Of a DNA stretch of 64,000 nucleotides, positions 14,023 to 63,702 are shown piece by piece (positions within the stretch are counted from its first letter, which is position 1; every line of letters starts with the position of its first letter). Below the pieces are notes generated by a model. That model did not search any database. It was not told the origin of the DNA and saw only the letters and a list, made by a program, of their open reading frames with translations. Location: the NCBI RefSeq assembly GCF_006345805.1, contig NC_042997.1, positions 204,910,001 through 204,974,000 on the forward strand, in the 5' to 3' direction. The position numbers and the translations under genes are program-made. The stretch is from Octopus sinensis (Eukaryota).

Positions 14023-16245
14023 ATGGCTGCCACGCAGACGACAACAACAGCAACCAGTTCTCTTATTCTTTCAATCATTCTTATTATCACACTGACATCA
14101 CTAAACATCGATGCGAAGGAACTCGGCAATGATTGTGAAGTTAAAATCCCTCCCAATATCGGTGAGATTTTATATCGTTTAGTAAAATTAGAAAAAGAGG
14201 TTTTCAATTTTGAAGTCCATTTATCAAACAAGACACTTGATGACCTTCTTAATCCTGTGCCATTGGATTATTTTGCAAATGCGAGGAATTTTACGTGGAT
14301 TCCAGATAAATCAGGTGCTTTAACTATATATAGAACTTTCTCCTATGATTTTCCAATGAATTCTTTTAATATGTTGGACGTCTACGTTGCTAAACAAAGG
14401 ATTGATATCAATATCACTTGTGGAAAACAAAATATTCAGAGACACGATTTAATATATTTGATATTCGACGCATTGAAAAGAATCATATTTATGGACAAAT
14501 TGCAAATGGCAGAATCTGGATACATGTGTTTTTTTATAAATTTGTCTCAAGACATGAAGATGAACAGCCCTTACTCATTTGAAACTTACAGAAGAATTGG
14601 TATAAATCGAGAAATTATAAAGAAGTATTGCTGTAAACTCTATAAAAATGAAAGTAATCTTTATCGCCCCAAATCCATTTGTTCAGGAAAAATCATTCAA
14701 AATGCTAACTTTTTTAATTATTTAGATATTTTCGGAGGGGTTCTGTGGCTATTTTTCCCATTAATTATTAGTTTTGTATCAAAAGCTAAATTACCTTCAC
14801 ATTCCCGTCAACTCAATCTGCCACTGTTTGCTCACGATGAATTCTTATTTACAATTAAAAACACATTGCCACACGAATCCGAGTGGATCAATGGAAAACA
14901 TAATATTTACACATTCTCTCATCTTCTGTCTTGGGTATTTTGTTTCCACAATTCCTCTTTCTTTGCCTCAAGACTAAGAAGATTCCTTTGTATTCTATTT
15001 TCTCTTTCAGTAATTTTCCTGGATCTTTTGATGCATTACTTCTTTTTATATGAAACAATAGCAATACTTTTCCAAGATGGTATACCGTTGGGACATCGCG
15101 CCTTAATATTAGGAATCCCAGAAAGTTATGAGAATACTGATGGCTTCTTTGGGGGTCCTTTTGTATGGTTAATCTCTTACGTATCTTTCAACTTTATCCT
15201 CTTCGTTCTTCCCAGTCGTTTAAGTGAGACTATCGCTTATAAAACATTACATCAAAGATCCACTTTCACGTTTCTCATTCAAAATAAGAGATTATTAGAG
15301 AAGTATGGCAATTTAGATGTTTCTACTCTACAGGATTATGATCTACTCTATGCAATAATGGAAGCTAATGTTTCTACAGCTTTAAACCCAAATTTCTTGT
15401 ATTTAATAATTTATACTTGGATTAATCGTATAAAGAAAATTTGGTTATATTACTACAGGAGAAATATTTTCTGGAAATTCATTACACTTTGGCTCTTTAT
15501 TTCCATTACAATTTTATTTGCTGTATTTTCTGTCTGTGAATTATTTCTGTGCCTCGTTTATTATGGAATCCCAATTTTTTATCTGATTTTAACTTTACCA
15601 TTAAGTTATTTCAGAGTTTATATTTTCCCCCTGTATTTGAATCCTAACTACATTTTCAAGATTATTGCTTTCATTTTAACATTCATATCGTTTCTATATT
15701 TTCTAGTGTGGGCAATTTATTCAATCTATATATTTCTTACAAGTTTTGAAACCATCTGCACGTATATATTTTCATCAGCTATTGCAGTACTTGCTAAGCC
15801 TGATACTGTTGGTGATATATGGTTTCTTTCCATGTTTCTTCTCTATGGTATTGCAATCATAAAATCTATTCAGAAACGGTATGACTTTATTCTACTCGAA
15901 TCCATAAAGCTCACCAAAATTCTTCGTCCAAATTTAGTTCAGTCAAAATATGGAGAAGAATTCATAAACGCCACTTTGTTCAAGACAATTGTTAACCACC
16001 GTTTTCCCTTGAGAAATGAGATTGGTAAATCCATTGTAAAACTGTTTTTAATCCTATCTTTTTTCCTTGCTTGCAACAATATAATAAGTCTAGAAGAGTT
16101 GCACTTATCAGCATTCACAAAGATTACTTTGATAATGATGACGTCTATGATACCTAAATTATTGTCTATGATAAATGCAGATCGTAGGTTAACAATAACC
16201 ATGTTAGATAAAATGATCCAAACAATAAACTTATTTGAAGAATGA
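14023..16245 (+). CDS. Uncharacterised multi-pass membrane protein, copy 1 (740 aa; CDS has no introns)
   Basis: Uninterrupted 740-codon ORF in AT-rich DNA. Hydrophobic signal-peptide-like N-terminus (SLILSIILIITLTSLNIDA), ~200-aa ectodomain with C38, C133, C169, C203, C204, C220 and several N-x-S/T sequons, then about 8-10 hydrophobic helices. Frame conserved in two paralogues. Confidence 0.9.
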   Translation: MAATQTTTTATSSLILSIILIITLTSLNIDAKELGNDCEVKIPPNIGEILYRLVKLEKEVFNFEVHLSNKTLDDLLNPVPLDYFANARNFTWIPDKSGALTIYRTFSYDFPMNSFNMLDVYVAKQRIDINITCGKQNIQRHDLIYLIFDALKRIIFMDKLQMAESGYMCFFINLSQDMKMNSPYSFETYRRIGINREIIKKYCCKLYKNESNLYRPKSICSGKIIQNANFFNYLDIFGGVLWLFFPLIISFVSKAKLPSHSRQLNLPLFAHDEFLFTIKNTLPHESEWINGKHNIYTFSHLLSWVFCFHNSSFFASRLRRFLCILFSLSVIFLDLLMHYFFLYETIAILFQDGIPLGHRALILGIPESYENTDGFFGGPFVWLISYVSFNFILFVLPSRLSETIAYKTLHQRSTFTFLIQNKRLLEKYGNLDVSTLQDYDLLYAIMEANVSTALNPNFLYLIIYTWINRIKKIWLYYYRRNIFWKFITLWLFISITILFAVFSVCELFLCLVYYGIPIFYLILTLPLSYFRVYIFPLYLNPNYIFKIIAFILTFISFLYFLVWAIYSIYIFLTSFETICTYIFSSAIAVLAKPDTVGDIWFLSMFLLYGIAIIKSIQKRYDFILLESIKLTKILRPNLVQSKYGEEFINATLFKTIVNHRFPLRNEIGKSIVKLFLILSFFLACNNIISLEELHLSAFTKITLIMMTSMIPKLLSMINADRRLTITMLDKMIQTINLFEE

Positions 16246-16339
16246 AATACATCACGGAGAAGTTTATCAAGTTATTTGATATTCTTCGATAAAATCAAAA
16301 TTCCTTCAAAGTGTTTTATGAATTCTAACCTACGTTCTG

Positions 16340-16640
16340 TAACATAATAATAGTAGTAGTAGTAGTATTAGTAGTAGTAGTAGTAGTAATAATAATAATA
16401 ATTGTTCTGGCCATTCTCACAGTTACAAACACACTTAGCCGCCTCCTATACCTACCTACCTACCTACCTACCTACCTACCTACCTACCTACATACATACA
16501 TACATACATACATACATACATACATACATACATACACACATACACACATACATATATACATACACATACATACATACATACATACATACATACATACATA
16601 CATACATACATACATACATACATACATACATACATACAGT
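16340..16640. repeat. (TAG)n/(TAA)n then (CTAC)n/(ATAC)n microsatellites
   Basis: Directly visible. Confidence 0.95.
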
Positions 16641-18559
16641 TTATAAATTATTAGATAATTATTTACCAGTGGCTATCATGCTTAACAGGAGTCAGAAGAC
16701 ATACATATATTTAAATATAATATTATATGAAAACATACAAGAAAACTACCATGTGGATTTCTTACATGCTAAAAATGGCAGTCGAAGCCTGAAACCATGA
16801 AAGAATATTTCTTACATTAAAGCATGTTTATGTGTACTGATGACGCGTGTTATCCTAGGAATACCTGTTACAACTATCCTGTTACCACCCAACCCCTGGA
16901 AACCATTGAAATATATAATCTCAAACAATTCTTCATTGCTTAATCTTATCTTTCTGTCTGGTTTAATCCAGATTTTTGTTTATTTTGTTTCGAATCGAAT
17001 AAAGAATTTATTTTGATATCAACTATAATGTTGTTTGACTTTCTTCTCCGAATCCACGCCTCTGGGCGCTCTGTATTATTATTCTCTATCCATTTCTCAG
17101 TTTGTGTGTGTTTATGTATATGTGTGCATGGGTTTGGGTGCATGTGTATGTGTGTCCATTAATCAAACAGTTGAGACTCATTGTTGGGTCTGTCAAAAGA
17201 ATTGAAAAATGAACAACCCTCAACATCAAGAATTTATAGGAATTGCAAATGAATGCAAACATGAATTTCAAAAAAAACGTCACATCTTCTGCATTACTTG
17301 CCTACAATTCGACGAGAATTACATTGGAGGAACAGAAACAAATTTCACCAACCGTGTGAACGTCCTCAAATAGTAAATTAAAATTCATCTTTTAGAAATT
17401 GTCCACGTAATAAACATGTAAACATTTGTGCGAATGAAAAATAGAAAATATACCCTTTTTACAAAATAAAAGACGAAAATATCCAGCTATGAAAGGCACT
17501 TTATAAGACTTCCCAATTTGAAACTAAACCAAACTGATTATTAAAAACAAGTTTCTCTACACGCATTACCCCAGATCATGTGTTTTGTAGAAGTTCAACA
17601 ACGAAAGCGGTTACATACAAAATACAAAGGCTTTGTGACATTCTATTCTCTAAATAAATTTTAAACAGTTAATAAATTTCAAAGTAAAAAAAACACTTAA
17701 AGAGAATGACTCTCCCTAGACATTTACAAGATCTTTCATGAAATATTTTGAGATTATCAAATACATTTAGAAGAACATTACCCCCCCCTCCACACACACA
17801 CACATCCATATGACGGTGCTGCAGAATGGTCGCAGTCAAATGGCTTAAACATGTAAAACAATAAAAGAATATATACATATCCTCGGTGCCACAAGCATTT
17901 TTGTCGCCCCCATGTTGAATTCAACGCATCTCTACATGTTGTAAATAGATTAGAAATATCTGGAAAATATATTTTCAGAACTCCTGTTTCCGTCGCCGAG
18001 GTGACTGTCTCGCTATCAGGCCATATATATATATATATACAGGATAAAGTGTAAAACTAATTAATCAATTAATAATTAATAATTTTACAAAGCAGTTCGG
18101 TATGTTAAAAGAACCATTATCGGTAAACTTATACAAAATTTCTATAATTACGTGCATAATTATAATTAGTGTTTAGCAAAATTTGCTTCACCAGACACCG
18201 AAATTTAGAAACAGCAGTTAAAATACTATTCTACTATCATAATATATCTCCCTGACAGCAATACTCTACATTTCACGCAGCTAAAGAGAAAAATAATGAA
18301 TCCAACCGCAACAATGGCGCAAAACAGGGAAAGAAAGTAAACGCTATCTTTTTGATTGCAGATATAGAAGTGATTAGTTTTAATTTTATAAATCCATTTA
18401 TGTGCCAATCATGAATGGAATAATGGCCAACTTAACTCATATCAATTGGCAAAAGACGATCCCGATGCTAGCTCTATGAAATGTCTGAAATCATACTTTG
18501 GTAAGCTTCATCAAGATCTCAATCATTTCACGGCGAAAGAGACAGAGATAGGAGGTACT

Positions 18560-25374: not shown

Positions 25375-25830
25375 TAATTGTTTCGCAGTAAAATGATTTA
25401 GTTGTGGATGCAGATCGTCCATGTATGGTTCCAATCTGATCAAACATCCAACGACGGGGTTTTGTTTAGCTCTTCTATAACAATTAATAAATCTGTCCTC
25501 AATTCATAAATCCAAGAAAAAAAAATGTGTTTTGTGGTTACGGTTTCTTCTCTAACTACAGCTAGAAAGAATCTGTTTATCTGTTGAGCTGTTGTTTTTG
25601 TTCTGTTCCTTGGTTGTGTTGTTGTTGTTCTTGATGTTGTGTCCAGCCATGTTGTTTGTAGTAAATCTCTGCATGCTAAATTCAAGTTTCAGTCGGAAAC
25701 CACCCCGATTAGTTAATCCATCTGAAGATGAACGAGTTATTTGATAAGGCTGGTAGTTGTAGCTTCAGAGTTGGAGATAGTAATCATCGTATTTTCGATG
25801 AATAGTCTGACACATCAAATAGGTGTATGT
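25375..25830 (-). mobile_element. 3' region of the (TATG)n-bearing R4-like family
   Basis: Matches 51540-51970 and 11800-12100. Confidence 0.7.
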
Positions 25831-25966
25831 ATGTATGTATTTAATAAGAAGGATTTATCTACATTCATTCCAGGAAATGGCATTGTGCCTTATTTATGAG
25901 GTTGCTGTGCTCTACTAGAAGTTCCCGAAGTCCATACATACGGTATGAGTGTGAGACAGGAATATA

Positions 25967-26325
25967 TCAGCTCATCAAATAAGTTCTGTCCGATTTTATC
26001 GTTTTTAAAATTGAATGAAATTTAATATTATTATAGAATGTCTATTGGAATTTAAAATTATTTTTATGCATTTCTGTACATTTCAACTAATGAAATATTA
26101 TTTTACAGAATAATAGAATTAAAATTTCGTTCATTAAAACACTTTCTAACATGGAAGTATCCAAAGAGCATTTAAAGAACATAATTTATGAGTAGAAAAA
26201 AGGGAACTCTGCAGCGGAAGCGACTCGAAACATACACTCAGTTTATGGGAAAAAATGCTTGAATGAAAGAACTTGCAGAAGATGGTTTGCAAAATTCAGA
26301 AGTGGAGATTTCAGCCTATTGAGGA
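25967..26325 (+). mobile_element. Mariner 5' fragment, duplicate of 12713-13075
   Basis: Same TIR and truncation point; an extra TAC>TAG stop (TATGAGTAG) removes the ORF. Confidence 0.85.
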
Positions 26326-27276
26326 GGCCAAAAGTCAACAATGTGTTGAAGTATTGAATCAAAAGGATCTAACTCTTTTAATTCAATCCCTTGTCGCCAA
26401 ATAAACTCAACGTTTTAGAGGGGAGATGGCCTAATTTTTGAATGGCAATTTTTTACTGGGGCTGAGGCAACTGAAAAGTGCAAAAGAATCGTTGAAAACA
26501 GGGCAAATTGGAAAAACGTGCTTGCAGGGAGCAGTCACTTACCGTGCTTCATTATTAGCAACGCCACTGGAAGAATGCAAGAGAGACAAAGATTTACATC
26601 AGTAAAATGTTTTCAGTAGGAATTTTGCCATTTAATGAGTTTGCTTCGCTAGAGTTGATCAGAGCGGCTGTAAGAAATATAACTTTGTTTTTATGTTAAA
26701 AGTTATATGAATAACCCAGAACACTGAACGGAGGAGTAGAATATTAGACAATAGTGACACTGGCGGACTTTATAAATTCAGTATCTTTTTTTATATTTGC
26801 CATTTAAACGCTGGTTATTGCAGATAAAAAAATCATCTGTTCCATTGTGGTGTTGAGGAGTTTCACAAACTCGTACAATCAGATGTTAATCGACTGTTAA
26901 TAAAGAGAACTGTTTTTTACGTCATCTATATTGAAACCTCCGTATTTTCAGTTCAAATATAACTTGATTCAGTTATGATGCTAATTTTAATACCTTGAAC
27001 TAGGTAGCATCGAATGCAATAGAACATCTCCTGCAACCGTTGAATAGAACATCTCCTGCAACCGTTGAATAGAAAATATTGACCTTGAAACGGGGATATG
27101 TTTAACCATAAAAGAGGTACTCGGCAACAGAAAAATGCATTGATTTCTCAGATACATTGACCACAACACTTATGATTATTTCGTAACATTGCAAATGTCT
27201 ATGAAATGAAGAAACAGAGTTGAATCTTCATTACTTAATATGCTTTGTTTTTTCATAGTTTTACAGATAACCAAAT

Positions 27277-29499
27277 ATGGCTGCCACGCAGACGACAACA
27301 ACAGCGACCAGTTCTCTTATTCTTTCAATCATTCTTATTATCACACTGACATCACTAAACATCGATGCGAAGGAATTCGGCAATGATTGTGAAGTTAAAA
27401 TCCCACCCAATATCGGTGAGATTTTATCTCGTTTAGTAAAATTAGAAAAAGAGGTTTTCAAATTTGAAGTCCATTTATCAAACAAGACACTTGATGACCT
27501 TCTTAACCCTGTGCCATTGGATTATTTTGCAAATGCGAGGAATTTTACGTGGATTCCAGATAAATCAGGTGCTTTAACTCTATATAGAACTTTCTCCTAT
27601 GATTTTTCAATGAATTCTTTTAATATCTTGGACGGCAACATTGCGAAACAAAGGATTGATATCAATATCACTTGTGGAAAACAAAATATTCAGAGACACG
27701 ATTTAATATATTTGATATTCGACGCATTGAAAAGAATCATATTTATGGAGAAATTGTAAATGGCAGAATCTGGATACATGTGTTTTTTTATAAATTTGTC
27801 TCAAGACATGAAGAAGAACAGCCCTGGCACATTTGAAACTTACAGAAGAATTGGTATAAATCGAGAAATTATAAAGAACTCTTGCTGTAAACTCTATAAA
27901 AATGAAAGTCATGTTTATCGCCCCAAATCTATTTGTTCAGGAAAAATCATTGAGAATTCTATATTTTACAATTATGCAAATACTTTCGGAGCTGTTTTGT
28001 GGGCTATATTACCATTACTCATTAGTTTCGTATCAAAAGCGAAAGTACCTTCACATTCCCGTCAACTCAATCTGCCACTGTTTGCTCACGATGAATTCTT
28101 ATTTACAATTAAAAACACATTGCCACACGAATCCGAGTGGATCAATGGAAAACATAATATTTACACATTCTCTCATCTTCTGTCTTGGGTATTTTGTTTC
28201 CACAATTCCTCTTTCTTTGCCTCAAGACTAAGAAGATTCCTTTGTATTCTATTTTCTCTTTCAGTACTCTTTCTGGATCTTTTGATGCATTACTTCTTTT
28301 TATATGAAACAATAGAAATTCTTTACCAAGATGGTATACCATTGGGTTATCGCGCCCTAATATTAGGAATAACAGAAAGTTATGACAATACAGATGGCTT
28401 CTTTGGGGGTCCGTTTGTATTGTTCACCAGCTATATATTTTTCAGCTTTATTCTCTTCGTTCTTCCCAGTCGAACAAGTGAGACTGTCGCTTATAATACA
28501 TTACATCAAAGATGCACTTTCACGTTTCTCATTCAAAATAAGAGATTATTAGAGAAGTATGGCAGTTTTAATGTTTCTACACTACAGGATTATGATCTAC
28601 TCTATGCAATAATGGAAGCTAATATTTCTACTGCTTTAAACCCAAATTTCTGGTATTTAATAATTTATACTTGGATTAACCGTATAAAGAAAATTTGGTT
28701 ATATTACTACAGGAGAAATATTTTCTGGCGATTCATTACACTTTGGCTCTGTGTTTCCATCACAATTTTATTTGCTGTATTTTCTGTCTGCGAATTATTT
28801 CTGTGCCTCGTTTATTATGGAATCCCAATTGTTTATCTGATTTTAACTTTACCATTAAGTTATTTCAGAGTTTATATTTACTCCCTGTATTTGAATCCTA
28901 ACTATATTTTCAAGATTATTGCTTTCATTTTAACATTCATATCGTTTCTATGTTTTATAATATGGGGAATTTATTCAATCTATATATTTCTTACAAGTTT
29001 TGAAACCATCTGCACGTATATATTTTCATCAGCTATTGCAGTACTTGCTAAGCCTGGTACTGTTGGTGATATATTGTTTGTTTCCATGTTTCTTCTCTAT
29101 GGTATTGAAATTATAAAAGCTATTCAGAAACGGTATGAGTTTATTCTACTCGAAGCCATAAAGCTCACCAAACTTCTTCGTCCAAATTTAGTTCAGTCAA
29201 AATATGGGGAAGAATTCATAAACGCCAAGTTGTTCAAGACAATTGTTAACCATAATTTTCCATTGAGAAACGAGATTGGTAAATCCATTGTAAAATTGTT
29301 TCTAATCATATATTTTTTCTTTGTTTGCAAAAATATATTAAATCAAAGTGAATTCGACTTTTCAACATTCACAAAGATTATTTTGATACTGGTGACGTCT
29401 GGCATGCCTAAGTTATTGTCTACAATAAATACGAATCTTAGGTTAACAATAACCATATTAGATAAAATTATTCAAACAATAAACGTATATGAAGAATAA
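27277..29499 (+). pseudogene. Multi-pass membrane protein copy 2, one nonsense change at codon 161 (CAA>TAA, 27757-27759)
   Basis: 160 aa + stop + 579 aa = 740 codons, colinear with copies 1 and 3, which have CAA at 14503 and 61960; no other stop or frameshift. Confidence 0.85.
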
Positions 29500-33694: not shown

Positions 33695-33794
33695 NNNNNN
33701 NNNNNNNNNNNNNNNNNNNNNNNNNNNNNNNNNNNNNNNNNNNNNNNNNNNNNNNNNNNNNNNNNNNNNNNNNNNNNNNNNNNNNNNNNNNNNN
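33695..33794. other. Assembly gap (100 N)
   Basis: Run of N; a SINE head (GGAGGTGAGCTGGCACAGACGT) is cut on the left and an R4-like RT on the right. Confidence 1.
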
Positions 33795-35050: not shown

Positions 35051-36200
35051 ATGACTGGATGCTAAAGCTCGTGGAAAATCACGAGAGACGAAAGAAGCTT
35101 CATTCTATCATAAAGGAAAGCAAAAAATTTGCTATTGATCTCGTGCAGGATTACCCAAACTGAACAACCCGAGAGAAGTACGGCAACTATTATTGCAAAG
35201 AAAGTGAAAATGATGGCAACGAAAAAAGCGCACGAGCAATTGGCTGATAGGTGGGAGGAGAAACCTCTGCACGGCAAATATGTGACCCGCAGCAAACAAG
35301 CTGATGTTGACCAGAAGCAAACCCATCAGTGGCTACGGAGCTCAGGGCTAAAAGCAGAGAGCGAATGTTTCATCCTGGCTGCTCAAGATCAAAGCCTATT
35401 AACCCGGAACTACCAGGCCAATGTAATCAAAAATGGAGCAGACCTAAAATGCCGATTCTGCAATGACATGATTGAAACAGTGGACCACCTAATCTCTGGA
35501 TGTAAAGTCTTAGCACCAGTGGAGTATAAATTAAGACATGAGAGAGTTGGCCAATATCTACACTGGCTAATAAGTCGGCATTACAATATCAAAACTGCCG
35601 ACAAGTGGTATAATCACCACCCTGAAGCTGTAACTGAAGGAGAAAATGTAACGATTCTGTGGGACTTTCCAGTACATACAGACCGAACCATCAAAGCCAA
35701 TAAACCAGACAAAAACAATAAAGTTTGCTTATTGATCGACATGAGCATCCCCTGTGATCATAATATCTCGGCGAAAGTGTTTGACAAGCTCAGAAAATAT
35801 AAAGACCTGCTCATTGAAATTGAGAAAATTTGGCATCTCAAGGCGGTTACAATACCAGTGATCGTAGGAGCACTAGGAATGATCAAGAAGGGAACCGAAA
35901 ATTATATGAGAATGATCCCTGGCTTACCATCCCTGCAAGAAGTGCAAAAGATTGTCTTAACTGGTACATCACACGTACTGAGAAGAGCATTGTCGCTGTG
36001 AGAGCTGTTACTGCCGATGTATTTTAATTTAACCTTAAAAAAAAAATGAACGAACTATTGAGTTTGGTTTAATGGCCTACCAATGTATACTATGAGTTTC
36101 TTTGCCCTAGGAGTCGGGAAGACGCTCGGCAAGAAATGGAAGCAAATTTGAAAGAAGAAGAAAAAAAAAGAAACAATAATAATAATAATAATAATAATAA
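35050..36200 (+). mobile_element. Second R4/Dong-like LINE 3' part with CCHC finger and restriction-like endonuclease
   Basis: WEEKPLHGKY, CRFCNDMIETVDHLISGC (CCHC), LWDFPVHTDRTIKANKPD..LIDMSIP..KLRKYKDL, IPVIVGALG; (TAA)n tail at ~36170-36200. Confidence 0.9.
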
Positions 36201-39299: not shown

Positions 39300-42200
39300 A
39301 TTAAAAATGTGGAGAAATTTTATTGTAGAACGCTGGTCGCGTTCCTTTATAGACCAGCATTTTCCTAGTCTGGGAACGCTAGGAGAAGAAAAAAAGAACT
39401 TATGCACGCAAAGTGCAAACCTGAATGACGTGGTAGTGAACGCTTCAACCACTTGCGGTAACAGCCCTGTCACCACCACCACCACCACTAACAACAACAA
39501 CAACGAGACTACTACTCTACCACCACCACCACTACCACCACGACCAACATAAATGATAAAGATGAAACTCACGCGAATACTATTAAGAAAAGCAACAACA
39601 GCAACAATAAAAATGAACTATCTAATAGTGAAGATGTTAATATAAAAAAATCAACAACACCAGTAAATTTCGCTGACACTCTGGGTCAGAAGAAAGAAAT
39701 AGTAACATTTACAAATGAAGAGCTAATAGAAACGAGAGCTCTCTTTACAACACGTGGGCAAGATTTAGTGCTGCATACACCTCAACACATAAAGGAACAA
39801 ATAGAAAATAAGACCATTATATATAGAATTATAAGATAAAACAAAAAACGAAATGAACAGATTACAAAAACAGATATAAAAAAATGTTTAAAAATCATAA
39901 TGAAAAAAAAAAGAATATATAAACTGGGGTCCCCAGTTTAACACAGTAGTGGTCCGCTTCCCTAACCAGGAAGTGGCAAAAGCTCACTCTACCGAGTCTT
40001 TGGAAAATGATGATATCAAAATGGTACCTTATTGCAAAGGCCAGAGAGTGAGTAGAATTACTATTAAAAATGTACCCCCCGAGATCCCGAACAAATGGAT
40101 AACAAGGGCAATCTGTAACCATTTGAAAAAGATCAATATTTTAGAAACCGCCGTATACCTAAACGACAATTGGGGTGGAAAAACAATAGTAGTGACCATC
40201 CAGATTGAGGGGGCTTCTATCGAAAACCTACCCGATAGGATCCACCTAGAAAATGGGCAAAGCCTATATGTTGTGGCAGAAGGCAAAAAGCCTAGATGCT
40301 ACAACTGTGGCAGCTCAGAGCATTAATTGCCAAGTGCGCTCTGGCACAGAAAAAACAAGAAAGAACAAATCAGAAAACAAATAAAAAACCCTTGTTGCCA
40401 ACACCAACACCAACACACTCAATTGTGGAACAATGCCAAGAAGAAAAACAACAAACCAGCAAACAAACCCCAACAACATCACCAAGAAAAGAAACAGTAC
40501 CAACAAAATCGCCGTTGACGACGCAACCAATTCATCATGCTGAACCAAAAGATAGACCCACACCAACACCCAGGACGACAACTAAAAAGACAGAAAACAG
40601 TGACGAGAAGACAAATTCTACCCCTAACACCATAACAACACAAACACCACACAAAACATCAACAATTTCTACAAGCATACATATTAACACAAATGCTTTG
40701 CTTTTACCCCCTTCTGATACGTCGGACGACGAAAGTTTGACGGAATGGCAAATAGCCACAGGGGGTAAAAGGAAAAGATCAAAAAAGCCCACCAAACAAG
40801 GAAGTAAAGCAGGGAGATATTTAACTCCGGACAGTATCCCCCTAGACAATCAAAAAATCAATGAACCCGCAAAACCACACACACAACTAACTGCAATAGA
40901 CACAGACAATAAAATATTAATGGATTACATTGTATCCAACACGGACATCTGTGAAGATGACTTTAAGACAAACAATCATCCGCGCACCACACCACCGAAG
41001 CACATAAAAATTGTACACATAACGCAAACACAACACCATACACTGAAAACAATATTTCCAAATGCGGTAGGCGGGTTTCAACGATACCTCTCCAAAAAAA
41101 CTATACAAACACCTCATCAAAGACACTACAAAAGAAGAAGAAAAAAATGAAACTTTCGAAATGAGTAAGTGACCTTCCCTCTTGCCTCTTTCTCTTCCAA
41201 TGTTTGTGTGTGAAACACAATTTTCGTAAACGTCAATTATGCTTAAATTAGGTTGTGTGAATGCGCGTGGCTTGGCGTCGGCTTGGAAGCAAGGTTACCT
41301 TCTAAACGACATCAAGTCACTGAACGTGGATATAGTAGCTATCAGTGAAACCAGACTCAGCAAGCCGCGGGCCCTTTTTGACATTTATTTTTCTCCCTGT
41401 CTGCCGAACATGGGTGGTAGAGGTACCGCGGTGCTTTTTCGAAAGAGTCTAAATGTAAAAGTAAGAGCAATATTCCTAGACTCGGAGGGTAGGCTGGTTG
41501 TCTTGGACGTGGATGGCAGAAATGGGTGTGCATTCCGTCTGATGGCAGTTTATGCACCGTCCTTAACGGGTCGGGCGGATTTCTTCAGGCGTCTAGAGGT
41601 TTTACTGGGTACGTCTAGACCTTTACTGTTAGTAGGGGATTGGAACGCTACCTTGGACACGCATCTAGAATATGTGGGAATGGATAGGAATAGAAGGAGG
41701 TGTAAGTGCCTCAAAGACCTACTCAGACGTTTCCATTTGTCTGACAGGTTCCGACTCGACCATCCGAACGTGCCAACGTGGACTTGGACAAACCGCGTCG
41801 GATCGTCGAGATCTTATCTAGATAGAATTCTATGCAGGACAGCGGATAGGGATAGTGTAGGATGTCCACAATTTAAAATAGTCAGCTACACAGATCACAA
41901 ATTTGTGACGTGTACGCTCGACTTAGATAAAACACATAGACAGGGTCCCGGTTACTGGAAACTAAACACGTCGCCCTTAGCGCGACAGGTTTACAGGAAC
42001 CGGATTAGCGAGTTAATTAAGAGGGCGCTGACGGGAGCCGTCGTTAACAATCGCTGGTGGTACGCCCTGAAAATGGCAATAAAATCGGAATCAATTAGGT
42101 TTAGCAAAGAATTAGCGATAGATCGAAATAGAGTAGAGGGAGATCTAGTTAAGAAACTAGAAGAGGCACTTACCACTGGCGGCGCAACCAACATGCTGGC

Positions 42201-42678
42201 TGCGAGGATGGCCCTCGACCAACACCTCAACGCCAAGCACGAAGGTTGCGTCGTCAGAGCTAAAATGCGTGCCTTAAGGAACGAAGGGATCGAAGCTGCG
42301 CGAGAGGCCCGGGTAGCGGAGGCGCAGCGTGGCAACAGAGCCACCATTCGGTCTCTAATAGATCAACAGGGATGCAGTTTACTCGAACCCGAAAGAATGT
42401 GTGAGGCCTTTCAACAGCACTTTGCTCGACTGTTTGGTACGAGTGGTGGGTCGGAACGCGGGATGGATTTCAGTGCCTACCTGACCGACCTGCCGCGGCT
42501 CTCGGCAAGAGAAGCGAAGTGTTGTGAAAGTCCCATCACAGCCGCTGACGTGCGGGATGCGATGGCGGGCTGCGCGAGGGATAAGTCGCCTGGATTGGAT
42601 GGTTTACCCTACGAGCTGTATTGTCAAATGCCAGACTTGTTTGGCGACCTCTTGTCTACTGCAACTGGCAACAAAACG
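39300..42678 (+). mobile_element. Tx1-like (L1 clade) LINE A: ORF1 + APE endonuclease + start of RT, 3'-truncated
   Basis: ORF1 pieces with PRCYNCGSSEH zinc knuckle and a T/P-rich tail; ORF2 41239 MLKLGCVNARGL..ISETRL..GDWNA..SYLDRI..TDHKFV..WKLN..KSPGLDGLPYELY; ends at YCNWQQN. Confidence 0.85.
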
Positions 42679-45600
42679 TACTGGTGGTTTTTCAGAATGA
42701 AGAGTTGGCAAAGCAATTCTCAACGCTAATCCTTCATTCCGATGAACTAACGATGACACCCAGTTACCTTGGCCAGAAGGTGACGAAGGTCATTATCAAT
42801 AATGTCCCCCAAGTAACAACCACACTATGGATAACATCCGAAAGGGAGGACTTAAACATCCTGGATATCGCTGTTTCGAAACACAAGGACTGGCTGGGAA
42901 AGAGAATGGAGTTTCTCTTCCACATAAGCCAAGACGACATTAACAAAATTCCCACCCACGTACATCTTGCGGATGGCCGCAAGTTGTACGTAGTAGTCAA
43001 GAGCAGAAGGCCACGCTGCTATACATGTGGAAGTGAGGCACACCTCAAAAGGGAGTGCAAATCTGCCGCTAAATCTCAACAACAACAACAGCCACAGGAA
43101 AAACCACAAAAGCCAGCATTATTGCCCACACCACAATATGGACGGCTAATCAAGAAGCTGTATGCAGAAATGCATGTAAAACAGCAAAGAACAGGCCAAC
43201 CCAACCAAACAACACCACCACCAGCGCCAAGAACAGAATCATCACCACCAACAACAACTAAACCAATTCCAACACCGAGAATAACAACGAAGAAGACAGG
43301 CACCAAGGATGTAGGAGAGACAATCACCACACCGAACCCCCCAGCAACACCCTCCCCGCACACCACAACAATATCTACAACCGCACAAACAGACCCAGAC
43401 GCTTTACCCTTACCCCTGCTGATTCGTCAGACTTTTCATCTAACGATGAAAGTTCGACAGAATGGCAAATAGCCACCGGGGGAAAAAGAAAAAGATAAAA
43501 AAAGACCAAACAAGAAAACGCAACCAAAGCAAGGAGATACCTGAACCCTGAAAACTCCATACACAACCAAACAAGCACCAACACCACAAAAACACACACA
43601 ATGCTATCAGCGATAGACACCAAAGACTCCAAACTAATGGAGTACATCACAGCCCACACAAACATCTGTGAAGATGACTTCAAAACTAACAATCATCCAC
43701 GCACTACACCACCCAAACACATCCAAATACTACACATCACACAAACACAACACCACAATCTCAAAGCCCTCTTTCCAAATGCTGTTGGGGGTTTCCAAAA
43801 TTATATCTCTCAAAAACTCTATAAAACCTCCTCCAAGACACATCAAAGAACGAGGAAGCCAAAACTTTCGACACAAGTAAGTAACTCTCTGTACTTTCCT
43901 TTTTGTGTTTTAAAGCACACACCCCAATAGAATCATGGTCAAGATTGGTTGTGTGAATGCGCGTGGCTTGGGGTCTCCTTGGAAACAAGGATACCTCCTA
44001 AATGACATCAAGTCACACGATTTGGGAATCATTGCCATAAGTGAGACCAGACTCCACGAGCCACGGGCCCTAAAGTCCATGTTTGGCGGACAGTTTAACA
44101 TTTATTTTGCTCCCTGTCTGCCGAGGATGGGCGGTAGTGGCACCGCGGTACTTTTTCACAAGAGCCTGGATCTCGAAGTCGACGATATTCGTAGACCCGG
44201 AGGGTAGACTGGTCGTTCTGGATGTCGACGGCAGCAATGGGTGCGCTTTTCGACTCGTATCAGTCTACGCACCGCCTTTAACAGGTCGGCCGGATTTCTT
44301 TCGACGTCTAGAAGTATTCCTGGGAACGTCTCGTCCTTTACTTTTAGTGGGGGATTGGAATGCTACCTTGGACACACATCTAGACTATGTGGGGAAAGAC
44401 AAAAACAGAAGGGGATGCAAATGCCACAGAGACCTGCTCAGACGCTTCCAACTGTCTGACACCCAAATGCACCAACGTGGACATGGAGCAACCGCAGTGG
44501 GTCGTCGAGATCGTATCTAGATAGGATACTGCGTAGGACAGTAGACAAGGATAACTTAGGATGTCCACAATTCCACACAGTCAGCTACATGGATCACAAA
44601 TTCGTGACGTGTACGCTAGACTTAGATAAGGCACATAGACAGGGTCCTGGTTACTGGAAACTGAACGCATCATTCCCGTCCAGACAAGTTTTCAGAGACA
44701 GGATCAACACGTTAGTAAAAAGGGCTTTAACGAGAGCCATTGTCAACAACAAATGGTGGTTCGCCCTCAAGAGAGCAGTAAAAGCGGAAGCAATAAGATA
44801 TAGCAAGGTACTAGCCGTAGATAGAAATAGAGTAGAGGGTGAGTTAGTTAAGAAGTTAGAAGAGGCAATAAGAAGCGGCATCACACCCGACGTTTTGGCA
44901 GCAAGTTTGCTCTTGACCAACACTTCAACGCCAAACACGAAGGGTGTGCTGTCAGGGCTAGGATGCGTGCTCTAAGGATGGAAGGTGTTGGAGCCGCGAG
45001 GGAGGCCCGGGTGGCGGAGGCGCAGCAGGGCAACAAAGCCACCATTCGGTCTCTGGTAGATGAACAAGGGCGCGAATTGCTCGAGCCCAGCAAGATGTGC
45101 GAGACATTTCAGCGGCACTTTGCCCGACTGTACGGGACGAGTGGTGAGCGTGAACGCAGGGTGGACTTCAGTGCCTACTTGCACAGCCTACCACGACTCT
45201 CGGCAAGAGAGGCAGAGTGCTGCGAAGGTGCCATCACGGCGGCGGAAGTGCGGGACGCGATGGCAGAATGCTCGAGAGACAAATCGCCGGGTTTGGATGG
45301 TCTGCCCTAAGAGTTTTCCAATTGTATGCCAGACTTGTTTGGAGACGTCTTGGCAGCGGTATACTGCAACTGGCAGCAAAACGGGAGCATACCCGGTTTT
45401 GTGAGTCGAGGAGCTGTAACACTGCTGAAGAAAGATCCAAACAAGGGGAACATTATAGATAACTTTAGACCAATCACTCTGCTCAATGCAGACCTGAAAA
45501 TTTTGACAAAGGTGTTAGCCAAGAGGTTGGCGCTTGTCATCGAAAAACTGGTCAAAAACTGGTCGACAACGCACAAACGTGCGCCGTGCCGGGCCGGACC

Positions 45601-47720
45601 ATCCATGACAACCTCCATCTGATGCGCTACATCATAGACAGGGTAGTTAACGAACCTGGCATGGGTGGAGCCCTGATCAACTTGGATCAATCGAAAGCCT
45701 TCGATAGGGTAGACCATCGATACTTGGAGGCAGTCCTGAGAGCGGCTGGTTTCGGTCCCGTCTTCCGCGGCTGGATAGCCGCTTTGTACAGAGGCATCCG
45801 TTCGGTAATTCGCGTAAATGGACATCTATCGAGACCTTTCGACATTGCATGTTCGGTCCGTCAGGGATGCCCCCTCTCGGCGCTTCTATACGTATTGACT
45901 CTTGAGCCACTACTGCGGAAGCTGGCGACTCTGAGGGGCATCCCGCGAGAATTGGGATGCGGGACGAGCGTGTCTGCATACGCGGACGACGTCACCGTCA
46001 TAGTGTCAAGCCACGCGCACACCGAGCTGGTCGGCGAGACACTGAAAGACTACGAAGCGGTGACAGGAGCAAAAGTCAACCGGGAAAAGTCAGTGGGCTT
46101 GCGGCTCGGCACCTGGAGAAGCAAGCCCATGCCGTCCACCAATACCTCCGTCGTGGGACGCTGGACAGACGCTGGTTGAGTTGCTCGGGGTCTGGTTCGG
46201 TCCGGACTTCCAAATGGAGAAGAACTGGAACGAGATAACGAGTAGGGTGGTCACTCTCGCCCAGCAATGGGCCGAGAGGAAACTGTCCCTAAAAGGTCGG
46301 GCGGAGGCGGCGAACACGTACATCGCGTCCATCATCTACTACCGCCTGACCGTCGTACCTTGTCCCGACCCCACCATCACCAAACTAGAACGCATTCTCT
46401 TCCGCTTCTTGTGGAAAGGATGCGTCCCGGTGGTCAGGCGATCCATTTGCTGTCAACACCCGTTAAAAGGAGGGCTGGGCATGCCGTGGTTGATGATGCG
46501 CAGACAGGCGACATCTCCGGCTCTATGTAGACGACGTGAACAGGTGTGGTCGCCGTTTGTGAGGCACGCATTCCCGCAACTCGTCTCCATGACCGAACTG
46601 CAGTCGTGGATCAAAAAGAGGCCGAGGAAGGGCGAATGGCACCGCGAGTGTCGCGTTGCTCTCAAGCAACTCTGCCGTCCCGGGTCGACCTTGAGTGACT
46701 TCAACACAACCAAAGCATTCTATAGGGGATTAGTGGAGGGGAGGTACGACGACGATCTCGGGGCAAACCTGGGCGTCGACGAGGAATACCTGACCCGCCT
46801 GTTTCAAACGACTTTCGGCCCGGGACCTATGGACAACTTCCAGAGATCCCTGGCCTGGCGGTGCTACCCAGAAGCGCTACCCGTTCGCGATAAGCTCTAT
46901 AGGCATGGCTCGAGAAACACGGGGCCGACCTGCCCGAGATGCGGTCAGAGCGACGAAACCGCTCTGCACGCAATCGTCCGGTGTCCAGCAATTTCCGACC
47001 TGTGGGCTTATGTCGAACGACTGCTGTCACGTGTGGGACGTGTCGGTTTATCAGCCGAGTCTATCGTTAATATCGTCACGCCTCCTTCCTTCAAACAGGA
47101 AGGAAGAGTTATTTTTATCATACTTGTGGCTATGGCAAAAGAATGTATCTGGTGGACGCGCCTGAAAGGATTAGAGACAAACACTTTCCTCTCTGGTCAA
47201 TCTCTCATCAACTTCTTCAAGTATCACTTGAAGAGGAAAGTGAGAGTAGAGAGGCAAGTTTTGTCTAGTGAATGTTTTAAAAAAAGATGGGTGAATGTAG
47301 CAAGGATGGCACGTATGAATGACGAAGCCACCTTGACTATGATTCTATGAACCATAAAAATTAATACAGAGAGTTGCTTATTTGCAAAAAAAAAAAAAAG
47401 AAATATAACATGTGACTTCATTGACCGAGGTTACCGTGGACTTTTCCGTAGGCTTTTCTTTCCACGGGTAAACCTCACCTGTCCTCCCCTTTACACTTCA
47501 TATTGACATTTCTGTGATAACGATCCCTATTGATCATTTTTTTCCTCTACCCCCTTTTTTTTAACCCCCCCTTTTTTTGTCCTCTTTCTCTCCTTTTACG
47601 ATCCCTTTTGATCGAAACTCCCCCCTCCTTTTTTTTTTTTAACCTTCAAAAGAAAAGCTCTACCTTGTAATTTGTTCTATCTGTGTGCAGCCCTGTGTGG
47701 CTAATAAAGAAACATATCTA
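42679..47720 (+). mobile_element. Tx1-like LINE B: partial ORF1 + complete but disrupted ORF2 + 3' UTR
   Basis: PRCYTCGSEAHLKREC knuckle; APE; FRPITLLNADLKIL, LDQSKAFDRVDH, VRQGCPLSALLY, AYADDV, CPRCGQSDETALHAIVRC; several stops and frameshifts; AATAAA at 47703 then (TA)n. Confidence 0.9.
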
Positions 47721-48079: not shown

Positions 48080-48345
48080 TAAACTGAAAGCCGCTCATCG
48101 TATGTGTGTATGTATGTATCAACGTGTGTCTGCTTTGTGTCCGTGTGTGTTCCCTACAATCGCTTGACAACCGATGTTGGCGTGTTTACGTCCCTGTTAC
48201 ATTAGCGCTTCGGCGAAAGAGACCAATTGAAAAAGTATTAGGATTACAAAAAATAAGTCTGGGGGTCAATTTCTTCAAATAAACCCCTTTTAAGTCGGTA
48301 CTCAAATGTGGCTGCAGTCAAATGTCTGACAACAGTCAGAGAATA
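48080..48345 (+). mobile_element. SINE 3' half (family of 22860-23318)
   Basis: CAATCGCTTGACAACCGATGTTGGCGTGTTTACGTCCC..GCTGCAGTCAAATGTCTGA. Confidence 0.75.
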
Positions 48346-48348
48346 AAA

Positions 48349-48414
<66 letters not shown>

Positions 48415-48438
48415 CACACCACACCAACAACAAACACA

Positions 48439-48469
<31 letters not shown>

Positions 48470-48655
48470 ACAAACAACACACACACACACACACAACACA
48501 CCACAAACAAAACACACCACACACAAACACACACACACACAACAAACACAACAAACAAACAAACACACACACCACACACACAAACACAACACACACACAA
48601 ACACCACACACACACAACCACACCACACACATACACACAAGCAAACACACACACA

Positions 48656-48686
<31 letters not shown>

Positions 48687-49473
48687 CAACACACACACAC
48701 AAAACACACACCACACACAAACACACACACACACACACACATACACACACCACACAAAACACACACACACATACACACACACACATACACCACACACAAA
48801 CACAACACACACAACACACCCACACAAAACACACACAACACCACAAACACACACAAACACACACACACACACCCAAACACACACAACACACACACACACA
48901 AAACCCACACACATACACACACACACAAACACACCACACAAAACACACACACACAAACCACACACAAACACATACACCACACAAACCACACACACACAAA
49001 CACACACACACACACACCCCCACACACACAAACACCCACACCACACAAAACACACACACACATACACAACACACAAACACACACACACCATACACACACA
49101 AACACACACACCACAAACACACACACAAACACACATACACACACACACACACATCCACACTACACACACACACACACACCACAACACAAAAACACACACA
49201 CACACAAACACACACACAAACATACACACACACAACACACACATACACACACCACACACACCATACACAACACCACAAACACACACACAACACACCACAC
49301 AAAACACACACACATACACCATACCACAAACACACACACCAACACACACACACAAACACACACACACACAAACACACAACACACACACACAAAACACACA
49401 CATACCCACACACACAATACACACACACCAACCAACACCACACACAAACAACACACTCAAACCACAAACACAA

Positions 49474-49515
<42 letters not shown>
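48345..49515. repeat. ~1.2-kb imperfect (CA)n/(CAA)/(CAC) tract
   Basis: Directly visible; source of the 282-421 aa CV-rich ORFs. Confidence 0.95.
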
Positions 49516-49517
<2 letters not shown>

Positions 49518-49814
49518 ACTATGAGGACATTTAGACCTCATGTAAGGATATTTTTATCCAAGACACACTGGTTTAATAGACTGAATTTTGCAGAGATATT
49601 TCCTCAATGAATATATTATATAAAATATCATAAAACATCAAAAATTATTATCAAATTTGAAAACGGAAAAATCCAATGGACACAAACTTATTAATTAATT
49701 AATTAACCTCTTCACCTACAATTGTTTCATTTCGCATCCAAATTAAATTACAAAACATATATAATATATAAACTTGAAAGGTTATATATTTATATATGTA
49801 ATTTGTATCCATAT

Positions 49815-60400: not shown

Positions 60401-60569
60401 GTTACGCTTACCTTAGCATGAATGCACACCTGTTTCTGTCACACCAACCTCTCTTCATCTGGCACAACATCACTTCTTCCAATGCTCCCTCCCCGTCTGA
60501 AAGAATATTTGTCTTGCAAATTACTTGGTGACCCTGCAAATGTTGGTGCCAGGTAAAGAGCCACCAATC

Positions 60570-60870: not shown

Positions 60871-61479
60871 TTAATCTATATTTTCAGCTGCCCCTAAGAA
60901 CGTCAATGGCTTCAATGTCTCTTTTATTGATTAGGTATTTAGTAGCAATCTCCCGTTCTTGGACTGTAAATGCATACCTTTCGAAGCCTAGTGTGATGTA
61001 TCGGTCATGAGTCCAAAAGGGGCTTCATTTCATCTCTGTGTTACTATCATCTTCAGGTCTACAAGAAACGTACTCATACATGGTCATTTCTTAGCGTTCC
61101 ATTTTGAATCTGTTTGAAACGAAATTCATACTCATTTCATATATCTTTACCATCTACATTCAAACCTCCGTATTTTCAGTTCAAATATAACTTGATTCAG
61201 TTATGATGCTAATTTTAATACCTTGAACTAGGTAGCATCGAATGCAATAGAACATCTCCTGCAACCTTTGAATAGAAAATATCGACCTTGAAACGGGGAT
61301 ATGTTTAACCATAAAGGAGGTACTCGGCAACAGAAAAATGCATTGATTTCTCAGATACATTGACCACAACACTTATGATTATTTCGTAACATTGCAAATG
61401 TTTATGAAATAAAGAAACGGAGTTGAATCTTCATTACTTAATATGCTTTGTTTTTTCATATTTTTACAGATAACCAAAT

Positions 61480-63702
61480 ATGGCTGCCGTGCAGACGACA
61501 ACAACAGCGACCAGTTCTCTTATTCTTTCAATCATTCTTATTATCACACTGACATCACTAAACATCGATGCGAAGGAACTCGGCAATGATTGTGAAGTTA
61601 AAATCCCTCTCAATATCGGTGAGATTTTATCTCGTTTAGTAAAATTAGAAAAAGAGGTTTTCAATTTTGAAATCCATTTATCAAACAAGACACTTGATGA
61701 ACTTCTTAATCCTGTACCTTTGGATTATTTTGCAAATGCGAGGAGTTTTACGTGGATTCCAGATAAATCAGGCGCTTTAACTCTATATAGAACTTTCTCC
61801 TATGATTTTTCAATGAATTCTTTTAATATGTTAGACGTCTACGTTGCTAAACAAAGGATTGACATCAATATCACTTGTGGAAAACAAAATATTCAGAGAC
61901 ACGATTTAATATATTTGATATTCGACGCATTGAAAAGAATCATATTTATGGACAAATTACAAATGGCAGAATCTGGATACATGTGTTTTTATATAAATTT
62001 GTCTCAAGACATGAAGAAGAACAGCCCTGGCACATTTGAAGCTCACAAAAGAATTGGTATAAATCGAGAACTTATGAAGAACTATTGCTGTAAACTCTAT
62101 AAAAATGAAAGTCATGTTTATCACACCAAATCCATTTGTTCAGGAAAAATCATTGAGAATTCTATATTTTACAATTATGCAAATACTTTCGGAGCTGTTT
62201 TGTGGGCTATATTACCATTACTCATTAGTTTCGTATCAAAAGCGAAAGTACCTTCACATTCCCGTCAACTCAATCTGCCACTGTCTGCTCACGATGAATT
62301 CTTATTTACAATTAAAAACACATTGCCATACAAATCAGAGTGGATCAATGGAAAAAATAATATTTACACATTCTCTCATTTTCTGTCAAGGGTATTTTGT
62401 TTCCACAATTCCTCTTTCTTTGCATCAAGACTAAGAAGATTCCTTTGTATTCTATTTTCTCTTTCAGTATTCTTTCTGGATCTTTTGATGCATTACTTCT
62501 TTTTATATGAAACAATAGAAATTCTTTACCAAGATGGTATCCCATTGGGCTATCGCGCCTTAATATTAGGAATAACAGAAAGTTACGACAATACAGATGG
62601 CTTCATGGGGGGTCCGTTTTTGTGGTTCACGGTCTACATATTTTTTAGCTTTATTCTCTTCGTTCTTCCCAGTCGAACAAGTGAGACTGTCGCTTATAAT
62701 ACATTACATCAAAGATCCACTTTCACGTTTCTCATTCAAAATAAGAGATTATTAGAGAAGTATGGCAGTTTAAATGTTTCTACTCTACAGGATTATGATC
62801 TACTCTATGCAGTAATGGAAGCTAATATTTCTACTGCTCTAAACCCAAATTTCTGGTATTTAATAATTTATACTTGGATTAATCGTATAAAGAAAATTTG
62901 GTTATATTACTACAGGAGAAATATTTTCTGGAAATTCATTACACTTTGGCTCTTTGTTTCCATTACAATTTTATTTGCTGTATTTTCTGTCTGTGAATTA
63001 TTTCTGTGCCTCGTTTATTATGGAATCCCAATTGTTTATCTGATTTTAACTTTACCATTAAGTTATTTCAGAGTTTATATTTACCCCCTGTATTTGAATC
63101 CTAACTATATTTTCAAGATTATTGCTTTCATTTTAACATTCATATCGTTTCTATGTTTTATAATATGGGGAATTTATTTAATCTTTATATTTCTTACAAG
63201 TTTTCAAATCCTCTGCATGTATATATTTTCATCAGCTATTGCAGTACTTGCTAAGCCTGGTACTGTTGGTGATATATGGTTTGTTTCCATGTTTCTTCTC
63301 TATGGTATTGAAATTATAAAAGCTATTCAGAAACGATATGACTTTATTCTACTCGAATCCATAAAGCTCACCAAAATTCTTCGTCCAAATTTAGTTCAGT
63401 CAAAATATGGGGAAGAATTCATAAACGCCAATTTGTTCAAGACAATTGTTAACCATAATTTTCCTTTGAGAAACGAGATTGGTAAATCCATTGTAAAATT
63501 GTTTCTAATCATATATTTTTTCTTTGTTTGCAAAAATATATTAAATCAAAGTGAATTCGACTTTTCAACATTCACAAAGATTATTTTGATACTGGTGACG
63601 TCTGGCATGCCTAAGTTATTGTCTACAATAAATACGAATCTTAGGTTAACAATAACCATATTGGATAAAATTATCCAAACAATAAACGTATTTGAAGAAT
63701 AA
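61480..63702 (+). CDS. Uncharacterised multi-pass membrane protein, copy 3 (740 aa; CDS has no introns)
   Basis: Intact ORF colinear with copy 1; same six ectodomain Cys and hydrophobic pattern. Confidence 0.9.
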   Translation: MAAVQTTTTATSSLILSIILIITLTSLNIDAKELGNDCEVKIPLNIGEILSRLVKLEKEVFNFEIHLSNKTLDELLNPVPLDYFANARSFTWIPDKSGALTLYRTFSYDFSMNSFNMLDVYVAKQRIDINITCGKQNIQRHDLIYLIFDALKRIIFMDKLQMAESGYMCFYINLSQDMKKNSPGTFEAHKRIGINRELMKNYCCKLYKNESHVYHTKSICSGKIIENSIFYNYANTFGAVLWAILPLLISFVSKAKVPSHSRQLNLPLSAHDEFLFTIKNTLPYKSEWINGKNNIYTFSHFLSRVFCFHNSSFFASRLRRFLCILFSLSVFFLDLLMHYFFLYETIEILYQDGIPLGYRALILGITESYDNTDGFMGGPFLWFTVYIFFSFILFVLPSRTSETVAYNTLHQRSTFTFLIQNKRLLEKYGSLNVSTLQDYDLLYAVMEANISTALNPNFWYLIIYTWINRIKKIWLYYYRRNIFWKFITLWLFVSITILFAVFSVCELFLCLVYYGIPIVYLILTLPLSYFRVYIYPLYLNPNYIFKIIAFILTFISFLCFIIWGIYLIFIFLTSFQILCMYIFSSAIAVLAKPGTVGDIWFVSMFLLYGIEIIKAIQKRYDFILLESIKLTKILRPNLVQSKYGEEFINANLFKTIVNHNFPLRNEIGKSIVKLFLIIYFFFVCKNILNQSEFDFSTFTKIILILVTSGMPKLLSTINTNLRLTITILDKIIQTINVFEE

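Follow-up and report, generated by a model that had tools for sequence, protein, structure and literature searches.

What do three long reading frames repeated along a stretch of octopus chromosome encode, and do they belong to a protein family that is already known? The DNA analysed here, referred to throughout as the window, is a 64-kb stretch of Octopus sinensis chromosome CM016859.1 (GCA_006345805.1; ~204.910-204.974 Mb). It carries three collinear and ungapped paralogous frames of 2,223 bp (740 codons), all on the (+) strand and named copies A, B and C (coordinates are collected in Table 1). The best explanation that we can offer, held with slightly more confidence than doubt, is that they are part of an octopod-expanded branch of an ancient family of orphan membrane glycoproteins, lying in a dispersed cluster of ~4 Mb.

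The three copies, their cluster and their relatives

The open reading frames (ORFs) of the three copies, and the in-frame TAA that interrupts copy B, were recovered exactly where a preliminary description of the sequence had placed three same-strand paralogues with one of them stopped. Copy A coincides in an exact-match look-up with the gene call at CM016859.1:204,924,023-204,926,245 and has an intact orthologue in O. vulgaris (CAI9716678; 96% identical). The premature TAA of copy B (27757-27759) stands at a codon that is CAA in copies A and C; copy B is a candidate pseudogene, unless the TAA is a variant due to sequencing or polymorphism. For copy C, a look-up of its exact product in the public collection found no gene on record. 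Nucleotide identity is 92.8% between A and B, 92.2% between A and C and 96.2% between B and C. The further claim that these are the only host-like genes in the 64 kb is upheld for long ORFs, the others being transposon-derived or artefacts, and does not extend to genes with small exons, for which no search was made.

A polypyrimidine tract and a TACAG splice acceptor located 11 nt 5′ of the ATG are kept in all three copies. This arrangement suggests an intron in the 5′ untranslated region (5′ UTR), the entire coding sequence (CDS) then lying in the last exon, and it agrees with the description of the CDS as intronless. The block upstream of copy A is 98% identical to the one upstream of copy B (25824-27276), which is above the identity of their CDSs, and 97.5% identical to the one upstream of the paralogue LOC118765918 (L002 8506-10000). 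Copy C has just the last ~360 bp of the block in common, with a breakpoint at 61146. This 1.45-kb region of A, B and LOC118765918 may be a promoter with the 5′ UTR intron that has been either homogenised or kept under constraint. Beginning ~100 bp 3′ of each copy, a tri- or tetranucleotide microsatellite expansion is found that differs by copy (within ~100-400 bp).

Three further paralogues with a single-exon CDS are found on the same chromosome (Table 1), and the copies of the family are dispersed across roughly 4 Mb of CM016859.1 on both strands. About 10-15 copies were found per octopus genome. The duplicated units extend over 3.8 kb between A and B, over at least 6.7 kb between A and LOC118765918 and over 2.7-2.9 kb in the comparisons with C; no terminal repeats common to these units were found when their extents were compared pairwise. 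The proposal of a tandem expansion with birth-and-death fits what is seen: the window holds three copies, of which one is stopped, and the same chromosome at least three others.

A word-indexed search retrieved octopod proteins alone (O. sinensis, O. vulgaris, O. bimaculoides and Argonauta), all of them “uncharacterized” except for two UniRef entries that are discussed below. An exhaustive profile search, which covered 1.84 billion representatives at a cut-off of E<=1e-3, identified 132 relatives, mostly 750-850 aa long and most of them aligned over the majority of their length, with non-cephalopod members reaching profile E-values of 1e-33 and better. The named members include bivalves (Mytilus, Ostrea, Mercenaria, Sinanodonta, Argopecten), a gastropod (Haliotis), an annelid (Owenia) and a brachiopod (Lingula), and none of these named non-cephalopod relatives bears a functional name. 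The Lingula homologue likewise has a single-exon CDS and adjoins a WD40 gene. The members that could be identified, a minority of the 132, come from across the Lophotrochozoa, and the family, which may range more widely still, did not originate with cephalopods. The notion of an undescribed, lineage-expanded family thus holds as to the lack of a recognised family and the octopod expansion, and needs widening as to its range, since its members are not confined to cephalopods. Searches of the literature on STRA6 and octopus and on twelve locus names of the family brought up no paper on these genes.

The oyster homologue, Ostrea edulis LOC125647777 (P0038 cluster), is present in full on ~12 independent Logan contigs of 3.4-3.7 kb. 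Their near-equal lengths suggest assemblies derived from transcripts, in which case the oyster gene would be expressed. Inspection of an Ostrea Logan contig (L006) for poly(A) and splice signs of expression gave nothing decisive.

Architecture and predicted fold of the encoded protein

The protein was dissected on copy A (Table 1) with the support of an alignment of 12 octopod sequences and of a later one, named A2, of 103 lophotrochozoan relatives. The succession of parts noted in the preliminary description (a signal-peptide-like start, a glycosylated ectodomain with six cysteines, a first transmembrane (TM) helix named TM1, a loop and a helix bundle) was confirmed. A hydrophobic N-terminus is found in copy A and in most of the relatives inspected. 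The ectodomain cysteines (38, 133, 169, 203, 204 and 220) are invariant in the 12 octopod sequences and 87-99% conserved across the 103 relatives. The conserved residues of the membrane core comprise an S316/R317/R320 motif, G377-G378-P379, F458/W459/R469, E506, P517, Y608, Y620, P662 and P711. Conservation reaches at least 90% for W92, C133, C169, C203, P246 and P397, for R317 and R320 and, from G377 onwards, for every core residue just named, including those of the C-terminal part (E506 to P711). Position 506 is acidic in 99% of the 103 relatives, in whose TM helices no conserved His/Asp/Ser constellation was found. The motifs that define membership of alignment A2 (the six cysteines, P246 of TM1, GGP377-379 and E506 among others) are retained in copies A and C, the exception among the conserved residues being W459, which is a leucine in copy A and a tryptophan in copy C.

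The core contains an insert of ~85 aa (residues 398-483) that is helical and rich in lysine and arginine. Over the 103 sequences the excess of these residues amounts to +5.4 in the insert and +2.2 at the C-terminus, and it is also found at the start of helix 313-351; these parts were therefore taken as cytosolic. The mature N-terminus would be outside, with the C-terminus and the insert in the cytosol. The chain would cross the membrane 9 times in total, or 10 times if the 49-residue hydrophobic helix 543-591 spans it twice.

Structure prediction with AlphaFold2 was unusable when based on the 12 octopod sequences (predicted local distance difference test (pLDDT) of 43). With the 103-sequence alignment it yielded a model with a pLDDT of 86.6 and a predicted template modelling score (pTM) of 0.83. 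Block means of pLDDT are ~87-97 in the ectodomain, with lower values at residues 32-40 only, and fall below 50 at residues 260-285 of the linker. Foldseek comparison of this model with the PDB gave 65 matches, none of them significant (best E=2; template modelling (TM) score <=0.11), among which the rows of TRP channels (E 2-9; TM-score ~0.07) were judged noise. Comparison with the viral structures of BFVD gave no significant match either (best E=1.1). At the sequence level, no Pfam family was matched at meaningful E-values in 40 scanned members, and the PDB was searched with the 12- and 103-sequence profiles without a match. The predicted fold is thus a confident one that has no counterpart in the PDB. 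G-protein-coupled receptors (GPCRs), Cys-loop receptors, ionotropic glutamate receptors, innexin/CALHM, TMC/TMEM16/OSCA, otopetrin and the insect odorant and gustatory receptors (OR/GR) were all without a Pfam match to the family or a Foldseek match in the PDB to its model (none below E=2). The impression that the sequence bears no recognised channel or receptor signature was therefore well founded, and the confident model extends it to the folds of the channel classes listed at that time.

The general plan of the protein has parallels in known systems. SID-1 has a signal peptide, a large glycosylated ectodomain, an isolated TM1, a long cytosolic loop and a compact multi-helix bundle, and the order of parts in SID-1/SIDT proteins (CREST) is that of the octopus family. 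The latter differs by having neither a Pfam SID-1_RNA_chan match nor a significant Foldseek match. It also lacks the His/Asp/Ser metal site of CREST proteins, E506 being its only conserved charged core residue. Frizzled/Smoothened, adhesion GPCRs and the GOLD-domain proteins TMEM87 and Wntless likewise combine a signal peptide, an ectodomain with cysteines and a helical bundle, and by analogy with them a receptor logic of the ectodomain-plus-bundle plan is plausible. In contrast to these ectodomain-7TM proteins, the octopus family would have 9-10 passes instead of 7-8, its bundle is interrupted by a disordered linker of ~60 aa and by the cytosolic helical insert of 85 aa, and Pfam and Foldseek provide no match between them.

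Which activity could such a protein have? The signal peptide, the disulfide-bonded glycosylated ectodomain and the N-out topology would place it on the cell surface or within the membranes of the secretory pathway. There the ectodomain would bind an extracellular partner. The helical core around the buried E506, together with Y339, Y386, Y514, Y529, Y608 and Y620, would make up a site at which a cation, proton or small ligand is bound or translocated. The protein would be a receptor-coupled transporter, or channel-like, and not an enzyme, because it has no residue set of catalytic type and presents a single buried conserved glutamate amid conserved tyrosines. Recent duplicates would diversify chiefly through the shuffling of pre-existing blocks. 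Taken as a whole, from surface location and partner binding to the site centred on E506, this mechanism is put forward tentatively and is open to considerable doubt. A bolder proposition, that the family is a new structural class restricted to Lophotrochozoa, in which a disulfide-bonded ectodomain is joined to a core of 9-10 helices around a buried glutamate to make a new type of ligand-gated channel, transporter or sensory receptor that octopods have lately multiplied and recombined, appears less probable still.

Several points weigh against an orphan family working in this way. The mechanism is built from the architecture plus a single conserved glutamate, and an essential transporter would be expected to have a lower ratio of nonsynonymous to synonymous substitution rates (dN/dS) than the ~0.5 observed. 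An exact-match look-up, which is a weak test, found no RNA-derived contig with exactly these octopus products. Some copies are dispensable, as seen from the stop in copy B and from truncated gene models elsewhere in the family (P0010, P0011 and P0015). Finally, the family could have a remote relative beyond the PDB and Pfam.

Divergence of the octopod copies and competing explanations

In all ten pairs that can be formed among five paralogues dN/dS is 0.44-0.62 and significantly below 1 (p 0.006 to 1e-9); with A, B and C alone the range is 0.46-0.62 (p 0.0015-0.006). A ratio near 1, as would be expected had selection ceased, is thus not observed, and the values indicate purifying selection that is real but moderately relaxed. 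In a neighbour-joining tree the clade formed by A, B, C and LOC118765918 has O. vulgaris members and no O. bimaculoides member, whereas the other paralogues pair 1:1 between O. sinensis and O. bimaculoides. A recent expansion of the family, accompanied by partial pseudogenisation, took place in the O. vulgaris/sinensis lineage.

Similarity between the copies changes along the CDS. In nt 601-825 and 1951-2223 (14623-14847 and 15973-16245 of the window in copy A), A is close to LOC118765918 (2-8 differences/150 nt) and B to C (0-4), while 25-31/150 nt separate A from B and C. LOC118765918 matches LOC115211026 in nt 826-1000, and in nt 976-1200 these two and A group apart from B and C. Synonymous divergence (pS) swings between 0.03 and 0.5 from one region to its neighbour. 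The mosaic blocks and the heterogeneity of pS indicate gene conversion between paralogues, and the copies concerned lie as much as 118 kb from each other. The “locally hypervariable segments” of the preliminary description are to be reinterpreted as conversion mosaics shared between alternative pairs of paralogues.

This distinction bears directly on the competing explanation that keeps most ground, namely that the family encodes fast-diversifying chemosensory or immune-recognition receptors whose ectodomain is under diversifying selection for many ligands. A lineage-specific tandem expansion, a single coding exon, a stopped copy, truncated models elsewhere and an overall dN/dS that is fairly high would all suit such receptors. 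The same genomic style (tandem arrays, single coding exons, pseudogenes and species-specific clades) is found in insect OR/GR and in the octopus chemotactile nicotinic-like receptors. The octopus family studied here is, however, unrelated to these in sequence and structure, and its variation comes via gene conversion without hypervariability on the ligand side. Hypervariability of the ectodomain was rejected, as this part does not vary more than the TM core: its ratio of nonsynonymous to synonymous differences (pN/pS) stands at 0.43, and octopod sequences have a pairwise identity of 0.65 here and of 0.64 in the core. These two measures gave no sign of diversifying selection on the ligand side (no site models were run). 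The variable blocks fall mainly near TM1 and within the final TM helices and are attributed to conversion, not to de novo diversification. Moreover, the family is old and has 1:1 orthologues in O. sinensis and O. bimaculoides, and its copy number is modest for a chemoreceptor repertoire. The case for such receptors is one of genomic style alone, and we regard it as unlikely.

Slightly less likely again is a local decay: the copies in the window would be dying duplicates without function, while the family still works elsewhere. The stop in copy B and the lack of a recorded gene call for copy C are what decay would produce, and the dN/dS values among A, B and C reach modest significance. Against this, A and C retain 740 uninterrupted codons, the O. 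vulgaris orthologue of copy A is intact, every pair has a dN/dS significantly below 1, and the residues conserved across the family are retained apart from W459 in copy A.

The question of a known identity is posed by two O. bimaculoides entries of UniRef, A0A0L8GSN3 (P0005) and A0A0L8GRC4 (P0007), that are called “Receptor for retinol uptake STRA6”. This is the sole functional name on any homologue in public databases, and of the ~10 octopod homologues listed two carry it. It would make the family one of divergent STRA6-like receptors for the uptake of retinol or some other lipid bound to a lipocalin. There is likeness in gross plan, STRA6 (5SY1) being a multi-pass protein of ~700 aa (~650-750 aa) with its N-terminus outside, its C-terminus in the cytosol, ~9 TM segments and unusually long helices. 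In addition, hhalign found one short local match, consisting of a cysteine and, after it, a TM helix that carries a YPLLL-like motif (P=0.009).

The other comparisons argue against the name. PF14752 (RBP_receptor) has no match at E<=1-10 in 40 members of the family, including both STRA6-named entries, whereas it is present in all 120 genuine STRA6 proteins listed (the best 120 of 531 retrieved with a zebrafish STRA6 query, all 120 from fish). The 103-sequence profile did not retrieve 5SY1 from the PDB at E<=10, and 5SY1 is absent among the 50 Foldseek matches listed (65 in all). With hhalign, zebrafish STRA6 was matched at a probability of 1% and a profile of 41 STRA6 sequences at 4.6%. Unfiltered hmmsearch (--max) against STRA6 scored about 0 bits in either direction and never above 3.6. 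The STRA6 profile used was of low diversity (effective number of sequences (Neff) ~2), as it was composed of fish sequences and a human sequence; the latter matched 5SY1 at E=2.6e-169, and that alignment supplied the zebrafish sequence. STRA6 lacks both the cleavable signal peptide of the octopus family and its 200-aa Cys-rich ectodomain with six cysteines; the separate TM1 is likewise an addition of the octopus family. The phyletic ranges differ too: the genuine STRA6 proteins retrieved are all vertebrate, and the identified members of the octopus family are all lophotrochozoan. The label is unsupported because Pfam, hhalign, hmmsearch, the PDB profile search and Foldseek were all negative. 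Its presence on so few homologues suggests a marginal automatic signature match as the probable source, and the name is probably a mis-annotation. Homology to STRA6 was rejected, although a very remote kinship is conceivable given the low diversity of the STRA6 profile; that these proteins are STRA6-like uptake receptors seems very improbable.

Hardly credible, and rejected, is a viral or transposon origin, in which a mobile element or endogenised virus would carry the genes as cargo: the remainder of the window is Helitron and LINE debris, the CDS is without introns and the copies are spread over ~4 Mb on both strands, but the extents of the units differ pair by pair with no common terminal repeats, a conserved splice acceptor stands ahead of the ATG, no transposase, reverse transcriptase or capsid domain is found inside the units, BFVD gave no fold match, orthologues are kept between species and the Lingula homologue is a host gene beside a WD40 gene.

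Surroundings of the genes and meaning of the family

The sole run of N in the window, located within retroelement debris between copies B and C, lies 4.2 kb past the stop of B and 27.7 kb ahead of the ATG of C. It is flanked on the left by a (CT)n microsatellite and on the right, at once, by a retroelement-like ORF. No reading frame of the family reaches or crosses this gap and its involvement in the genes was rejected, as no CDS is touched. The spacing of B and C, and strictly also their adjacency, depend on the assembly across the 100 N and are uncertain. The segment 33795-36001 holds two retroelement-like ORFs, both with an “...EKPLHGKY...” motif and the second with a weak zf-RVT match; the first starts at the edge of the gap, so that the 5′ part of the element is either unread or truncated.

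Elsewhere in the window a 179-bp tandem repeat (9951-10602; 3.6 copies, 90% match) has related units near other paralogues (loci L003 and L004), and it may be a short interspersed element (SINE) or a satellite family associated with the gene cluster. The minus-strand ORFs of ~400 aa found at 48244-49541 were rejected as genes because they are located on a degenerate (AC)n tract.

Table 1. Copies of the gene family, parts of the protein encoded by copy A and other features of the window. Positions are those of the window unless given in Mb of chromosome CM016859.1.
Feature	Position	Strand	Remarks
Copy A	14023-16245	+	Intact, 740 codons; single-exon CDS; TGA stop (16243-16245)
Copy B	27277-29499	+	Collinear with A and C; single in-frame TAA at codon 161; terminal TAA (29497-29499) overlapping AATAAA
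Copy C	61480-63702	+	Intact, 740 codons; TAA stop (63700-63702) overlapping AATAAA
Signal-peptide-like N-terminus, copy A residues 1-31	14023-14115	+	Core LILSIILIITLTSL, then NIDA/KE; read by eye
Alpha/beta ectodomain, copy A residues 32-229	14116-14709	+	Six Cys, W92, five N-x-S/T sequons
TM1, copy A residues 230-253	14710-14781	+	P246 98% conserved
Linker, copy A residues 254-312	14782-14958	+	Disordered, indel-rich, putatively cytosolic
Helical membrane core, copy A residues 313-718	14959-16176	+	8 long helices; 9 passes if 543-591 spans twice
E506 codon	15538-15540	+	Sole near-invariant charged residue within the membrane core
Splice-acceptor AG of copies A, B and C	14011-14012 (A); 27265-27266 (B); 61468-61469 (C)	+	Sequence reading
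Block upstream of copy A	12570-14022	+	Putative 5′ UTR intron and promoter region
LOC118765918	205.04 Mb		Paralogue, single-exon CDS
LOC115211026	205.34 Mb	opposite	Paralogue, single-exon CDS
LOC115232508	208.61 Mb	opposite	Paralogue, single-exon CDS
Assembly gap	33695-33794		100 N
Helitron-type PIF1-like helicase ORF	5305-6369	+	Pfam E=4e-66; adjoining ORF 3992-5308
LINE-like element (long interspersed element)	40296-43472		AP-endonuclease domain (41239-42729) and zinc knuckle
Second LINE-like copy	43443-45383		Directly downstream of the first, 75% identical
zf-RVT ORFs	35129-36001 and 46181-47350		Pfam; match of 35129-36001 weak
Degenerate (AC)n tract, ~1.2 kb	48351-49514	- (ORFs)	Three overlapping spurious ORFs, 280-420 aa

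If the isolation of the family holds, these genes stand for a conserved class of ~800-aa membrane proteins of molluscs, annelids and brachiopods that was not detected elsewhere in the search and is functionally unannotated. The surprise is moderate, as under-studied phyla commonly have orphan membrane families and the genes were already deposited as “uncharacterized protein”. The probable STRA6 mis-annotation could propagate and mislead work on retinoid signalling in molluscs. The octopus cluster offers a clean case of gene conversion that mimics the evolution of “hypervariable” receptors. The family as a whole is a tractable target in the search for novel transport or sensing biology of Lophotrochozoa, and a well-defined one, with a confident model, a glutamate (E506) that can be mutated and clear orthologues in oysters and mussels.

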